Shown piece by piece: positions 27,533 through 35,779 of a stretch of DNA of 64,000 bases. Both the position numbers and the translations under genes were made by a program. The notes under the pieces are model-generated. The model was not told where the DNA came from, searched no databases, and saw nothing but the letters and a program-made list of their open reading frames with translations. Every line of letters begins with the position of its first letter. Position 1 is the first letter of the stretch. Source of the DNA: Macrostomum hystrix (lineage: Eukaryota; Animalia; Platyhelminthes); contig CATNEN010000037.1 in NCBI GenBank assembly GCA_950097015.1, positions 186,001-250,000 of the forward strand, in the 5' to 3' direction.

Positions 27533-28380
27533 CATCAAAGGATTCAGATCTCGAATCAAAGGATTCAGATCTCTAATCTAAGTATTATGAACTCTAATCA
27601 AAGGATTCAGATCTCTAATCAAAGGATTCAGATTTCTAATCAAAGGATTCAGATCTCCAATCAAAGGATTTAGATCTCTAATCAAAGGATTCAGATCTCC
27701 AATCAAAGGATTTAGATCTCTAATCAAAGGATTCATATCTCTAATCAAAGACGTCAGATTTCTAATCAAAGGATTCATATCTCTAATCAAAGGATTCAGA
27801 TCTCTAATCAAAGGATTCAGATCTCTAATCAAAGGATTCAGATCTCTAATCAAAGGATTCAGATCTCTAATCAAAACTAGACGTCAGATTTCTAATCAAA
27901 GGATTCAGATTTCTAATCAAAGGATTCAGATCTCTAATCAAAGGATTCAGATCTCTAATCAAAGGATTCAGATCTCTAATCAAAGGATTCAGATCTCTAA
28001 TCAAAGGATTCAGATCTCTAATCAAAGGATTCAGATCTCCAATCAAAGACTTCAGATTTCTAATCAAAGGATTCCGATCTCAAATCAAAGACTTCAGATT
28101 TCTAATCAAAGGATTCCGATCTCAAATCAAAGACTTCAGATTTCTAATCAAAGGATTCAGATCTCCAATCAAAGACTTCAGATTTCTAATCAAAGGATTC
28201 CGATCTCAAATCAAAGGATTCAGATCTCAAATCAAAGGATTCAGATTTCTAATCAAAGGATTCAGATCTCAAATCAAAGGATTCTTCAGATCTCAAATCT
28301 AAGTATTCAGATTTCTAACCAACGGATTCAGATCTCTAATCAAAGGATTCAGATCTCAATACTCGAATTAAAGGATTCAG
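27533..28380. repeat. 21-bp minisatellite (AATCAAAGGATTCAGATCTCT)n
   Basis: Direct reading. Confidence 0.92.
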
Positions 28381-28907
28381 ATAAAAAATCAAAGGCTTTA
28401 GGAGAGCCCACCTGCGATTGTCTCCGGCCTAGGTGAAGAAACTGCGTCACCACAACACTACGCAACGTGATTTTTGTTACGAAATGTCTATTCATTACTG
28501 GACTATAGGACTTTTATCGCAGCAAAGCATTTCTTACCTGAAACGCGATAAAGTGCTGGACAATTTCGCAGTCGCTTATGGAACAAATTTCTTTCAGCTT
28601 TCTCAATTTATAAGGATCCAACTTGGAAAAATGATTGAATCAAGACACAGTCTACAACAGACTAACATGCGGTTTTTTGTATAAAACACCAGAAAGCTTT
28701 TGATTGGATGTGGGCGATGAGAGATCAGAACATCCGTGCCAACTGATTCTCTCAGATCACACCGGCTGCTCTCATTGGCTACATAGAGTGAGGCTGCGTT
28801 TACTGTAATTATTTCATGCCTAATCTGACATATCAATCAATTTTTGGCTGTTTTAGCTAAACACGACATGTAACAAGCTGCAAAGATGGGACACAGAGGT
28901 AAAAAGT

Positions 28908-29235
28908 TTGCAGACAGGTGTGACACACAGGTAACAACACTATACAGACAGGTCTGACACAAAGGTAGCAGCACTATACAGACAGGTGTGACACACAGGT
29001 AACAACACTATACAGGCAGGTGTTACACACAGGTAACAACAACACTATACAGACAGGTGTGACACACAGGTAACAACACTATACAGACAGGTGTTACACA
29101 CAGGTAACAACACTATACAGACAGGTGTTACACACAGGTAACAACAACACTATACAGACAGGTGTGACACACAGGTAACAACACTATACAGATAGGTGTG
29201 ACACACGTGTAACACCAAAATACAGACAAAGTGTA
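28908..29235. repeat. 34-bp minisatellite (ACAGACAGGTGTGACACACAGGTAACAACACTAT)n, left array
   Basis: Same unit, variants and orientation as 34620-35225. Confidence 0.92.
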
Positions 29236-29556: not shown

Positions 29557-32500
29557 TCAGTGCTGAGACGTGATCTGCCACTTCAAAGCCTTGAGCGACC
29601 TTGCACAGGCCATTTCCTTCAGACAGGTCTGAAAAAAGCGAACTTCATATCTTTAGACATTTTACCAACCATGGCTGTTTTATGATAGCTAGTTACTATT
29701 TTCCCAGCATTAAACTCGAACAAGGAAAAAAATATTTTTGTGCCTTCGTCTTTATCTTATTTAACGAGTGATTGCATACACAGAAACCATTAGCAAAAGT
29801 CTTAATATTCTATTCAGCTTTGAAATGAAACTTCGAAAATAGTTTTAACGAACTAATAATAATAATAATTGCAGGAGGGCTGCGGGCAATGGCACATCAT
29901 TTGGCTGAAGGGTCGGTAGCAGAGCGGTTAACGCGTTTGCCTCTCGCCCCACGGTCCTTAAGTTCGATTCCGCGGCGAGGCCACATTCATTTGGGGCGCA
30001 GTCATTCGTGCAATTTACGCCCTTGAAGGCAAAGCTCCAAGGCACAGTGAAATGTACACTGCCTGACGATGAGAAAGTCAGGGCAGATGTACACACCCGT
30101 GCGAGCTTGTGCCTGCGTACAGTATCTGTGTGCGTGTGTGCTCAGGAGTCAGCGAAATGGGCAGAATTGCCTCCTCGCTGGCTGCGGGTCTAGTATTTCA
30201 ACGAACTGGAAGTTATTTGTGTTTTGTGACTAGTGACTCGGAATTCTCTCAGTCAGTCAATCGGGGTCTGACTCACCCGCTCCTTCACCAAGTCTTCCAG
30301 CTTCTGCTTCAACGCTACTTCGCTGTTGATCAATCGATGATGCGACTGAATTAGTCGAACGAGGCAGTCCGAATCGGTGGCATAGTACATCACCATGGCA
30401 ACCTCCTGCGAGTCGGCGTCTTCGTCCTGCACAATGGCATCAAAGTACGCCTCCGCACTTATTTCTCCTGGTAGAAACTCCAGGAGTAACGCCTTCATGA
30501 GGATGTCAAAGTTAGCCAGGTAATAGCTCATGTAGTTTCTTATTCGAATGGGAAAAATTTCTCTCAATTTCTCCGGAAGGAAGTCGAATTTGACGCCTTC
30601 AAAGAACTCTAAAAATCCAGGAATGTTGAAGTAAAACTTCCACGCCGAATCAGAGCCAGTCAGGTGTCGCCACACCAATTCCGGCGTTGCTTTATCCACC
30701 GTCAACTCGTGGGGCAGGTAAATGCCCCGGCTCACCGCATGGCCTTTGTAGTTGTGCAATACTGCAACCGCCTCATCCACACGGCCCAGTTTCAGAAGCC
30801 GCATCACTCTTAGGCCTTCTCGGGCGGTTTTGGCACAGTCTGGCAGCCTATTTAGGTCGGACTCAAATGACCGGAGGTCGCAGTCCTGTTCATCATCTTG
30901 CAGGTCAAGAAGCAGGACTCGCACCATGTCGTAGACTTCGTGGTACTCCAGCTCGCCAGCTGGGCTTACAGGCAGCAGTTGCCACAGGTCGGGAATGATG
31001 AGGAACGGGTGAAAGTAGAATGAGTTTGGGGATTTCAGTGGCTTCAGGGTTGCCCTGAACTGCTCAAATAGCTGGGGCAGTCGCTCCATGGTTTTTCTAA
31101 TCACTTCAGCCACTTCTTGCTTCTCATTTGAGCCTCCTTTCAGGTATACAATCGCGTCACGCAGGAAGAAGTGTCGCATGCACTCGCCTGTCTCTGAGCT
31201 GGCACTGAGCAGGCTGGCACGGAGTTTCTCGAAAGCTTTTATAGCCAAGTGCAGCAGGTTGCACGGCTGCCACTCACCCTGCGGCGTCTCTTCCAGCATG
31301 TAGAAGATGAGTGTCTTGGCGTGGTAGGTCTTCAGACCCGCGATCTTCTTGCCAATGACCTTCTTAATTATGAACTTGAGCGTCAGGAAGAGCTGACCCT
31401 GGACAGTCGTCAGGCTGCGCATCAAGCGGTTCTCCAAGAAGGTGGTGCTGAGCCTTAGGAAGCTTCCTTCCTGGCCTGGCGGAGCTGCGGTGGCCAGGTG
31501 ACACATGGAGCGCGCGGCTTCCAATTTCAACGCCAGCAGTACTTGGTCAGGTAGGCAAGTTGGGAAGCCTTCCTCCAGGATTTTAATTTCCGGGTAGCAA
31601 CAACAGCGGTATACGGTTACGTTGTCGATTGCAGGCCTGGCAAAGGATCCCAGTTCCGCCTTGGACGGGTTCGACGCTAAAAAGCAACGGAGATGCAAAA
31701 TGGAATCAGCTGAAAGCTATGAAAATGTATTTGGCATCAGACAGATCGAACGCACTGGCTCCGCTGAACTTCACGTGTCCGTTCTCGTAGTCGACAACGT
31801 CTTCGCCAGCTGCCTCTTCGCAGCGGCACAATCCTCGAATGTGAAGCAGGCGACCCGGATAGAATGACGTCACGTCAATGTCCGAGTCCGGGTCCGTCTT
31901 GCCGCTCAGCCGCACCAGACTGTTGCCCCAGCCCTCCGAGAAGCTGCCAACGATGAAAGTTGTCGACTCCTTGGATCTCTGTCTGATGATTTGCTGAAGT
32001 ACGTTGGCTGTGGCTCCTTGTACAGCAGAGCGAACTTCGTGAAATCCTGAGTCGACAAGACTATCGTGAAGCCGCAGGCTCACATTATCTGGCGCTAAGC
32101 TGCTTAAGTTGCGAAAATTGGCTTGATTTAATGTTTAATAATGAAAATATTGCAGGAGGGCTGCGGGCAATGGCACATCATTTGGTGACACTAGACCCGC
32201 AGCCAGCGAGGAGGCAATTCTGCCCATTTCGCTGACTCCTGAGCGCACACGCACACAGGTGCGTACATCTGCGCTGACTTTCTCATCTTCAGGCAGTGTA
32301 CCTGTGCCTTTGAGGGTACGGAAGGCCCACAAGCCTTCTCTCCGCGGCTGCGCCCCAAATGAATGCGGCCTCGCTGCGGAATCGAGCTCAGGGACCTTGA
32401 CGCGAGAGGCAAACGCTTTAGACCGCTCTGCCACTCACCCCGTGCTTAATTAGTTTACCTTAAAACAACTTAGCAACAGGACATTTTGTAGCTGAAAATG

Positions 32501-33925
32501 GAAGGCTTACCGCTCAGAGTTGATCGGTGGTAGGGTTTCAGAAGCCCGTGACTTCAAAAGCCGAATGCGCTCCACGATGGCGGGCAGGAAACTCGGGTCC
32601 GGTTTCAGTGCCAGAATTAGCGGCTCGTCGATGCTTGCGGCGGCCAAAGCCTCCAGAATCTCTCGAGCCTCCGCAAAATCGCCGTGAAAACACAAGGACT
32701 CAAGCAGGTCAATCTGCACCTTTAGATTATTGGACTCGCTCTCTGCTTCGGCTAAAATGTCCGCTACCTGTCTCTGGCCATTGTGCACTGCCAAGTCAAT
32801 GGCCGTTAGGCCCTCCTCGGATGCCAACAAAATATTAGCTCCAGCCCTGATCAACTCTGCGGCAACTTCAACGAATCCCTCCTGCGCTGCCACATGCAAG
32901 GCGGCGAAGCCTTGGTACTGCTGCTGATTGACATCGGCACCGGCGTCTGCCAGAATCTTGACAGTCTGGTGGAGGCCATTTTGGGCAGCAGCAAACAATG
33001 GCGACTCACCCGTCAGCTTTGGGAGGTTCACCTGTGCTTGAGCACTTAGCAGTGAGCGCACGACCTGGTTGTGCCCGTTCTGGGCCGCAATGTACAGCGG
33101 AGTGGAGCCGGTCTCGGAGGCCAGATCCACGTCGGCGCACGCGCCGATCAGAGCCTCCACCGCGCGCTGTTGGCCGTTCTCCGACGCGATATGCAGCGGC
33201 GACTCGCCGTTGAACATCTGCAGATCCACGTCAACCGTGCAAGTGTCAATTAGCAGCTTGACCACCTCCGAGTGGCCGTTCTGGGCGGCGATATAGATCG
33301 GTGAAGCTCCCTGCTGCTGCTGAGCGTTCGTGTCGGCGCCCGCTTCCGCTAGGGCCTTAGTCAGCTTCGCGTGGCCACTTTCTGCGGCTATGTAAATCGG
33401 CGACTCCGCGGTAATTTTAGGCAGGTCCGGGTTCGCCCCGGAGTTCAGCAGCAGGCAGGCCAGCCGGTTGTGGCCTTTCTCCACCGCGAGGTACAGCGGC
33501 GTTGCGCCAGACTCTTGGCGAGCGTCAACATTCGCCTGGGCTGCAATGAGGCTGCGGGCCACCTGGAAGTGGTTGTTAAGGACTGCAAGGTGCAGCGCCG
33601 AGTAGCCCTGGCTCTGCAGGGCATTCACGTCCGCCTGGAAGACTAGCAGCTCGTCCGTCACCGCCTTGCTGCCAGCATCCGCTGCCAGATGAAGCGGCGT
33701 CAAGTCGGAGCTGACAGTTGACAGGCTGGGATCCGCGCCAGCTAGGAGCAGGGCTGCCGCAAACTCAGCTCGGCCTAGGTTGGAGGCCAGGTGCAAGGCG
33801 CTGATTCCAGCATTGTTAATGGCATCGGCCCTGTGACCCTGACGCAGCAGCTGCTCGAGACCTGGCAGGTCTCCCCTCAGGACTGCGTTCATTAACTCCG
33901 CTGCCTGGTCAGCGGTGGAAGCCAT
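29557..33925 (-). CDS. Ankyrin-repeat / cGAS-like receptor (Mab-21 nucleotidyltransferase) fusion; exons 33925-32511, 32099-31756, 31676-30277, 29628-29557 (1076 aa), or exon 3 read through to the stop at 30253 (1060 aa)
   Basis: Exon 1 has 12 ANK repeats (TPLHLAA-type). Donor GAGCG|GTAAGC (phase 2) joins acceptor TAAGCAG|C in frame. GSFSEG..DSDID in exon 2; 79-bp intron GCCA|GTGCGT..TTTTTAG; IDNV third Asp, LRLSTTFLE, LKTYHAKT, HFF Mab-21 motifs in exon 3; donor CGG|GTGAGT and acceptor TTTTTTCAG give an in-frame exon 4. Domains are certain; the splicing is predicted. Confidence 0.8.
29855..30195 (+). mobile_element. tRNA-derived SINE copy 1 with 5' inversion (body on +, 3' end and (ATT)n tail on -), about 12-bp TSD
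   Basis: A box GGTAGCAGAGCGG and B box GTTCGATTCC at 29910-29965; TSD TTTTAACGAACT (29843-29854) / TTTCAACGAACT (30196-30207). Confidence 0.82.
32137..32441 (-). mobile_element. tRNA-derived SINE copy 2, collinear, in intron 1 of the ANK-cGLR gene
   Basis: A box TGGCAGAGCGG and B-box-like GCTCGATTCC on minus; body and 3' end homologous to copy 1, including a 55-bp identical block. Confidence 0.85.
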
Positions 33926-34619
33926 GTTTGTGATCGACAAATAGATTTTTCTCTTCTAGGCTCGGCGTTGCGTACCATGTGTTTTTGTAGAAGGCGAAAA
34001 TATATAGAAACCACATAGTACCCAAGTTCTCTTTTTTGAATAAACAATTAAAAGGACCGGATAGGGGATAGGGAGAGGAATGTACAAAGCAGAAATTTCT
34101 TGTACAGATCCACCAACCCCTTGACCGTACTGCTGTGAGTGCAAAGCTTTGTGCATGGCTTTCAATAGCTAGTAGCAGTAAAGGCGCAGTGCTGTACACA
34201 GCCGAGACAATCGACGCACAACCAACAGAAACGATAAGAGTATGAGCTGCTTGTCCAGCTACAATACAGGCTACAATACAGAACTGTACAGATGACTGCT
34301 TATACGAGAGGTAACGTTGACGCGGATGATTTTGACAATGAAAAGTTCTAGAGACACATTCTTAGGATTGTGTCTAACACTTACTGAATCAATATGAAGC
34401 TTATGAGCAGTTAGGAATGAGCTCATTTGAAGTATTCAGCCTTTGCATTATGATTAGGCTAGCTAGGGGCTCTTAAAATAAGTTAGGTTTCACCTCGTGA
34501 CCACTGACGAGGCTAAGGATGAAAGATTAGAGGACGACTTGAGCCGCAGCAACACCTGTTCATCAACGATCTAAGCCATCTCAGCTTTAGCTACGAGTCA
34601 AAAAGACAAACGCACTAAA

Positions 34620-35225
34620 GAGACAGGCGTGACACACAGGTAACAACACTATACAGACAGGTGTGACACACAGGTAACAACACTATACAGACAGGTGTGA
34701 CACACAGGTAACAACACTATACAGACAGGTGTGACACACGTGTAACACCAAAATACAGACAAAGTGTGACACACAGGTAACAACACTATACAGACAGGTG
34801 TGGCACACAGGTAACAACACTATACAGACAGGTGTGACACACAGGTAACAACACTATACAGACAGGTCTGACACAAAGGTAGCAGCACTATACAGACAGG
34901 TGTGACACACAGGTAACAACACTATACAGACAGGTCTGACACAAAGGTAGCAGCACTATACAGACAGGTGTTACACACAGGTAACAACACTATACAGACA
35001 GGTGTTACACACAGGTAACAACACTATACAGACAGGTGTGACACACGTGTAACACCAAAATACAGACAAAGTGTGACACACAGGTAACAACACTATACAG
35101 ACAGGTGTGACACACGTGTAACACCAAAATACAGACAAAGTGTGACACACAGGTAACAACACTATACAGACAGGTGTGGCACACAGGTAACAACACTATA
35201 CAGACAGGTGTGGCACACATAGGCA
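34620..35225. repeat. 34-bp minisatellite, right array
   Basis: Same family as 28908-29235. Confidence 0.92.
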
Positions 35226-35779
35226 ACACAAACAGTGATTCATTCGAACTACTGAATTTCAGTAAGAAAATAAAAGAAAGAAAAAAGTATTGAAGTTATT
35301 AACGGTTATCAGCAAATGCTGAATGGCGAACTGTAAAAAACTTAACTGAAATGCATCCGTTGAAGCTGGGCTATAAGTGGATGGGAAAAATATCCCTTTG
35401 TTTTTATTATAAAAATGCAGATACGAGTATAGTCTCATGACGACCTGACTGACAGTTATTGAAAAAATGATACAATTTTACTAACAAATAACTTTTGCTA
35501 CGAAATAAAAGAGTGAAAACAGTACATCTGTTTTGCTTCGCGAAAAAAATTGTTGAAACAAAACATCAAGACAAATATTAAGCGCTTGTGGAAGAATGAA
35601 TATTCACACACACAAATACTAACTGTATAATTAGAATGCTAAAAAGCAAAGATAAAAACTGAGTACATACTATTAGTTTTTAATAAAGAAAATAACATGA
35701 ATGCAAAACTGCAACAAATATGAAAACGGCCTAAACACTTAAGAGCACATAAGCACTTGTAGTGAAACGCCTCCGATCA

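Follow-up and report, generated by a model that had tools for sequence, protein, structure and literature searches.

Twin priming leaves a characteristic anatomy, which has been defined for L1 elements (PMC12016303, PMC2912911). Twin-primed L1, processed-pseudogene and Alu insertions (Ostertag and Kazazian 2001, cited in PMC12016303; PMC2912911) have a single target-site duplication, a tailed 3′ segment in the sense orientation and an inverted 5′ segment, the two segments being contiguous in the source RNA. The same anatomy was found in a short interspersed element (SINE) of the flatworm Macrostomum hystrix, in a 64,000-nt stretch of contig CATNEN010000037.1 (GenBank assembly GCA_950097015.1, positions 186,001 to 250,000 of the forward strand; hereafter the window, in which positions are given unless a contig is named). 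This SINE lies downstream of the third exon of a minus-strand gene coding for ankyrin repeats and a Mab21 region, and a second copy of the same family lies, in opposite orientation, in the first intron (Table 1). We consider it likely that both copies go back to independent and neutral events in which an abundant tRNA-like SINE entered non-coding sequence of a single gene from an ankyrin + Mab21 (cGAS-like) family, and that the downstream copy was flipped by twin priming. Unlike twin-primed L1 and Alu elements, the downstream composite derives from a 340-nt SINE with an (ATT)n tail and not from a poly(A), L1-dependent element, and its non-inverted part is only about 50 nt long. An earlier reading of the window, hereafter the original prediction, had seen in the pair an architecture that could form circular RNA (circRNA) and double-stranded RNA (dsRNA) of the gene's own making.

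The entire downstream composite (left in the window) was enclosed by a single 12-nt duplication with one mismatch. Inside it, the 3′ piece and its tail were sense to the gene, the body was inverted relative to them, and the two segments were contiguous in the source element, of which only about 3-4 nt had been lost at the break. Identity of this copy to the family consensus was 93.8%. From this anatomy we infer a 5′ inversion of the twin-priming type, in which reverse transcription primed from both nicked target strands would have flipped about 290 of the 340 nt. The copy would have landed in putative intron 3 or in the 3′ untranslated region (UTR), 46 nt past the read-through stop of exon 3 when counted to the duplicated target site and 58 nt when counted to the element. 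A 37-nt direct repeat adjoining both SINE copies (29868-29904 = 32149-32185), which was absent from the original prediction, turned out to be the 3′ piece of the SINE itself; at the left copy this piece and the body have opposite orientations. New here are the sense orientation of both insertions at entry, where their 3′ ends would have pointed in the direction of the gene, the antisense state of the downstream arm, and hence the inverted repeat, as a result of the 5′ inversion alone, and the growth of intron 1 from 69 to 411 nt.

The canonical junction between core and 3′ piece had 821 exact occurrences in the genome. The flipped junction of 3′ piece and head had two, one here and one on contig C34, with different breakpoints. 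These counts mark the flipped form as a rare accident, and on them we rejected a subfamily that propagates with its 3′ piece foremost. The composite would be a clean example of a 5′-inverted SINE outside mammals, and inversions of this kind can turn insertions of the same orientation into intragenic inverted repeats. The C34 copy (C34:1549626-1549674, minus strand), the second SINE with its 3′ piece flipped before the head, has its breakpoint 14 nt further into the core and looks like an independent 5′-inversion event or a head-to-head pair.

The upstream (right) copy was in canonical order. On the gene strand its tRNA-like head starts at 32441 and is followed by the body, the core, a 3′ piece of 37-44 nt (32185-32149) and a degenerate A/T-rich tail (32148-32112). 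In its alignment with the family consensus, 77 columns held gaps and the aligned ones gave 92.3% identity; the copy occupies 330 of the 411 nt of intron 1. Its 12-nt duplicates agreed at 9 of 12 positions. Removal of the SINE together with one duplicate left an intron of 69 nt, and the insertion point was exactly the 3′ splice site of that intron, where the insertion would have expanded it to its present length. The upstream duplicate now reads CAC and the downstream duplicate supplies the present acceptor CAG; thus, the SINE has not been exonised.

The family to which both copies belong was searched for in the M. hystrix assembly (220,453,370 bp, 42 contigs). Its 33-nt core gave 3,912 matches with at most two mismatches (2,005 and 1,907 on the two strands), while the reversed control gave none, which puts the family at 3,912 copies or more. 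Copies from many contigs were 82-91% identical to the left copy by BLAST. In an alignment of 27 copies, the canonical element began with a head (about 75 nt; A-box-like and B-box-like motifs) and a body, continued with a highly conserved core and a 3′ piece (about 44 nt) and ended in a tail of the (ATT)n type. In the consensus head, TGGCAGAGCGG was A-box-like (10/11) and AGTTCGATTCC was B-box-like (10/11), both as read by eye. The element is about 340 nt long and thus short (<500 nt), dispersed and of high copy number, as SINEs are. The consensus and the two local copies alike had an (ATT)n or TAT-rich simple-repeat tail after the 3′ piece, and target-site duplications surrounded each local copy (11/12 left, 9/12 right). 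Tails of this kind, A-box-like and B-box-like motifs in a 75-nt head, a conserved core, duplications of 12 nt and copies in the thousands are all shared with the tRNA-derived SINEs that end in a simple repeat. No description of this family was found in the literature on Macrostomum SINEs, and repeats were left uncharacterised in the M. hystrix genome paper (PMC10468722). The family, with about 4,000 copies and a defined structure, is apparently undescribed. Three direct-oriented copies at C34:6390602-6393774, spaced by 1.2-1.6 kb and each 90.2% identical to the query, look like a tandem segmental duplication that carried the SINE with it.

Within the 64-kb window, BLAST with the left copy as query found these two copies only. 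Their bodies, of about 290 nt, lie inverted at 29905-30195 and 32190-32441. The repeat search returned three inverted matches between them, 30126-30194 with 32190-32258 (69 nt, 99%), 29929-30001 with 32348-32420 (73 nt, 88%) and 30043-30112 with 32243-32312 (70 nt, 80%), which are collinear and link 29929-30194 with 32190-32420. Search and alignment thus bore out the inverted bodies of the original prediction, with the upstream one sense and the downstream one antisense to the minus-strand gene, and its 55-bp perfect block was an exact reverse complement on direct comparison. The block did not hold as a signal particular to this locus, being instead the conserved core of the family. The 55/69-nt block coincides with the best-conserved columns in the alignment of 27 copies; 4 of 27 unrelated copies were identical to the left copy over it and 10 of 27 had one mismatch at most.

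The left and right copies were 89.3% identical in aligned columns, compared with 88.3 ± 1.6% for the right copy and 88.8 ± 1.4% for the left copy against random family members. Identity to the consensus averaged 93.3% in the family and was 92-94% in both local copies. Since the local pair is no more alike than random copies, there is no sign of conversion or of selection for complementarity. On contig C1 (13.2 Mb), the first 100 listed copies with an exact core included three inverted and two direct pairs of neighbours within 2.5 kb, and more inverted pairs were present among the canonical-junction matches listed. A full-length inverted partner lay within 1.5 kb at 2 of 27 SINE-centred loci. 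Scaled to 3,912 copies, these counts give an estimated 100-300 inverted pairs within 2.5 kb in the genome. The repeat is far beyond chance as a sequence. Two inverted copies about 2 kb apart or closer are nothing unusual in M. hystrix, and the frequency of such pairs removes the suggestion of a purpose-built architecture. Genic annotation covers about 84% of the assembly (PMC10468722). We regard the locus as what abundant SINEs ordinarily produce in a genome that is compact and dense in genes, and not as a device made for circRNA or self-dsRNA, and there is no indication of selection for by-products at the RNA level.

The gene resembles the cGAS-like receptors (PMC8410604, PMC9980059), one of which, Drosophila cGLR1, senses dsRNA (PMC8410604). 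Like them, it ends in a Mab-21 domain, which is preceded by an exon with candidate GS and acidic-pair motifs, and its sequence weakly matches structures of cGAS and cGLR1. Unlike them, it has an N-terminal array of 12 ankyrin repeats, it does not match the Pfam Mab-21 core model, and it has at least 91 paralogous exons in the genome. Protein searches were run exon by exon, full-length relatives (about 1,090 aa) being beyond the length range of the protein search. In the open reading frame (ORF) of exon 2 we found GSFSEGWG and DSDIDV, and the third acidic residue was not located. GSxxxGWG and SDxDV are the consensus of five M. lignano proteins containing this region, in an alignment that exon 2 itself stands outside. 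Exon 2 alone had no match in Pfam or PDB. Exon 3 matched Pfam PF20266 (Mab-21_C) with 27.2 bits against a cut-off of 24.1, and weakly matched cGAS chains (E = 0.002-0.003) and cGLR1 (E = 0.019). The nearest named proteins were M. lignano ankyrin + Mab-21 proteins, with 33-40% identity.

The acceptor of exon 2 (CAG/C at 32100/32099) and the donor of exon 3 (CGG/GTGAGT at 30277/30276) are both usable. GTRAG, encoding V-S or V-R, was present at the position homologous to this donor in 4 of 11 paralogs; this suggests that a phase-0 donor is likely conserved at the end of exon 3. Putative exon 4 had no counterpart in 11 paralog loci (tblastn, tblastx) or among the variable C-termini of M. lignano proteins. 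A scan for poly(A) signals found neither AATAAA nor ATTAAA on the gene strand from 30300 to 28900. Because exon 4 is unsupported and a canonical poly(A) signal is absent there, the left arm may lie in a putative intron, in the 3′ UTR or beyond the transcript. The statement of the original prediction that the arms bracket exactly the nucleotidyltransferase exons held: the two Mab21 exons, 2 and 3, are enclosed and no others. The downstream arm would be intronic only if putative exon 4 is real.

Table 1. Features of the gene and of the two SINE insertions (positions in the window; empty cells, no strand assigned)
Feature	Position	Strand	Description
Exon 1, ankyrin repeats	32511-33940	-	ORF; Ank Pfam families to E = 3e-64; ends ...GAG CG / GTAAGC, phase 2
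Intron 1	32100-32510	-	411 nt, GTAAGC...CAG; frame continues into the exon 2 ORF
Exon 2, nucleotidyltransferase core	31756-32099	-	344 nt; GS..GWG motif and SDIDV acidic pair in ORF
Intron 2	31677-31755	-	79 nt, GTGCGT...TTTTTAG
Exon 3, Mab-21 C-terminal region	30277-31676	-	1400 nt; ends ...GAG CGG / GTGAGT
Putative intron 3	29629-30276	-	648 nt (295 nt without the SINE); holds the left composite; proposed from donor and acceptor strings only
Putative exon 4	29557-29628	-	23 codons and stop after TTTTTTCAG acceptor; proposed from sequence only
55-nt perfect block, conserved family core	30140-30194		exact reverse complement of 32190-32244
Body of left SINE, from head through conserved core	29905-30195	+	flipped relative to its own 3′ piece; antisense to gene
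Left SINE 3′ piece and tail	29855-29904	-	3′ piece 29904-29868, (ATT)5 tail 29869-29855; sense on gene strand
Left composite target-site duplication, gene-strand 3′ side, TTTTAACGAACT	29843-29854		11/12 match to 30196-30207
Left composite target-site duplication, gene-strand 5′ side, TTTCAACGAACT	30196-30207		pairs with 29843-29854
Right SINE	32112-32441	-	canonical order, sense to gene; from alignment to 27 genomic copies
Right SINE 3′ target-site duplication, CTGCTTAAGTTG	32100-32111		last two gene-strand bases are the AG acceptor of exon 2
Right SINE 5′ target-site duplication, GTGCTTAATTAG	32442-32453		former acceptor AG now AC on gene strand

It seems unlikely that exon 3 is the last exon and that the transcript stops short of the left SINE or inside it, so that the two arms would never or rarely share one RNA and would have no consequence at the RNA level. 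When exon 3 is read through GTGAGT, its frame stops 8 codons on, at 30253. Several paralog frames likewise end within 0-20 codons of the homologous position without a donor, no conserved downstream exon was found at the 11 paralog loci, and the interval from the stop to the SINE contains a variant hexamer, AATAAC, at 30217. However, with no canonical signal on the scanned strand, nothing speaks positively for a 3′ end ahead of 30195. The near-consensus donor also stands exactly where four paralogs keep GTRAG, and the M. lignano relatives extend 15-45 residues past this point.

Two points of the original prediction on the RNA held up. The first, in silico, was that the precursor messenger RNA (pre-mRNA) can fold on itself. 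Cofolding of both arms as transcribed gave -431.8 kcal/mol, a gain over the separate folds (ddG) of about -206 kcal/mol, compared with -9 ± 3 for shuffled partners. In the minimum-energy fold of a 3,021-nt stretch of pre-mRNA, the arms made 206 pairs with each other and their longest helix measured 55 bp; the predicted duplex stopped 91 nt short of the acceptor of exon 2 and 83 nt short of the donor of exon 3. The second was the length of the circle: exon 2 (344 nt) and exon 3 (1400 nt) add up to 1744 nt, which is 1 mod 3 and fits the exon phases. The predicted junction of exon 1 with exon 4 reads ...R-P-V-stop and would give an ankyrin-only product ending ...SER-PV-stop. The architecture is real, as is its folding potential in silico, and the interpretation built on them is partly supported.

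Intronic reverse-complementary matches, made up of inverted Alu or other repeats, flank circRNA exons in Caenorhabditis elegans zip-2 (PMC8330042) and in human genes (PMC8938519). The present locus has in common with these inverted dispersed repeats next to the acceptor and donor, a long (here predicted) intramolecular duplex and an ADAR gene in the genome. It differs in that the downstream flank is only a putative intron, the arms are without locus-specific conservation and the RNA effects are predicted ones. No circRNA study in flatworms was found in a literature search. We consider it quite unlikely that the arms form a working match of this kind, in which donor 30276 would be brought to acceptor 32100 to give a 1744-nt circRNA, a skipped ankyrin-only mRNA or both, and so affect the output of full-length receptor. 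The predicted pairs, the 55-bp perfect helix and the ddG of the arms speak for it, as do their position less than 100 nt from both splice sites, the GTGAGT donor with its homologous GTRAG in 4 of 11 paralogs, the fitting exon phases, the R-P-V-stop of the skipped junction and the back-splicing and skipping that such matches drive in C. elegans (PMC8330042). Against it, exon 4 finds no support in 11 paralog loci or in M. lignano proteins, and back-splicing would need the donor at 30276 and a downstream exon. Complementarity of the arms is no higher than among random family members, and such pairs are common in the M. hystrix genome. In addition, the 411-nt intron 1 may leave before the second arm, 2 kb downstream, is transcribed.

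If both arms were present in one primary transcript, they could pair imperfectly over about 250 bp, in a duplex within 100 nt of both the acceptor of exon 2 and the donor of exon 3. Plausible by-products of such co-transcription are back-splicing at a low level, skipping of the exons, editing by ADAR and processing by Dicer. An ADAR1-like gene was found at C9:212248-216066, with Z-alpha, two dsrm and A_deamin domains on consecutive minus-strand ORFs, and A_deamin matched at two more loci, on C2 and C25. Editing of the duplex is therefore possible in principle. The estimated 100-300 exon-proximal inverted pairs, together with the ADAR1-like gene, are ready loci for asking about repeat-driven back-splicing and editing in flatworms. 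The further idea of the original prediction, that the gene presents its own dsRNA ligand, is weak and stacks one inference on another, since a nuclear intronic duplex is unlikely to meet a putative, presumably cytosolic sensor.

That the downstream composite consists of two insertions, a 5′-truncated SINE end of 50 nt on the minus strand beside a 3′-truncated body on the plus strand, is improbable. SINE copies do cluster locally in the M. hystrix genome, and 5′ inversions are very rare for SINEs in one well-studied system (PMC12016303). However, the one 12-nt duplication (11/12) lies around both parts and none lies between them, the parts are neighbouring segments of the source with a loss of only about 3-4 nt, and a body lacking its own 3′ piece and tail should not have mobilised. 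We give very little credence to a stronger version of events, in which a rare twin-priming accident created in one step a strong intramolecular duplex yielding the 1744-nt circRNA with the complete coding region of the nucleotidyltransferase, the ankyrin-only isoform or both, with ADAR1-like editing or Dicer processing tuning the output of an innate-immune receptor. A local rearrangement, such as inversion of the DNA between the copies, or gene conversion between them is scarcely credible and both were rejected: the 69-nt stretch at 99% within a pair otherwise 73-89% similar resembled a conversion tract but is the conserved core, equally identical in unrelated copies that are as close as the pair itself, each copy has its own intact target-site duplication, and the order and frame of the enclosed exons are normal.

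Several points weigh against the reading of two independent neutral insertions, one of them twin-primed. Unlike in tRNA-derived SINEs, the head of the M. hystrix family was missed by tRNA finders: ARAGORN reported no tRNA in it and Rfam gave nothing at E up to 1, so that the tRNA-derived label follows from the box motifs alone. The 5′ inversion is deduced from anatomy, and for human SINEs it is very rare (1/5,936 germline Alu; PMC12016303). The predicted duplex is unusually strong and near both splice sites, a geometry that in C. elegans and mammals favours both skipping and back-splicing (PMC8330042, PMC8938519). The base rate of inverted pairs was drawn from part of the matches and not from a full genome census, and neutrality is a default and not a result.

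The ankyrin/Mab21 family is very largely expanded in M. hystrix. Exon 3 had at least 91 matches across the genome with 32-49% identity, many of them clustered (C18, C3, C1) and a few with in-frame stops, and SINE copies adjoined 3 of the 11 paralogs sampled. One protein of 347 aa, with 50% identity to exon 3, is recorded as part of the metagenome-assembled genome of a Kangiellaceae bacterium, and JGI metagenomes are the source of three further matches; probably all of these stem from flatworm DNA that was binned with bacteria. Satellite arrays of the same 34/37-nt unit lie on either side of the gene, at 28908-29209 and about 34971-35229 in the window. Downstream of the satellite, at 27867-28400, there is a tandem array with a unit of about 20 nt (GATCTGAATCCTTTGATTAGA-like).

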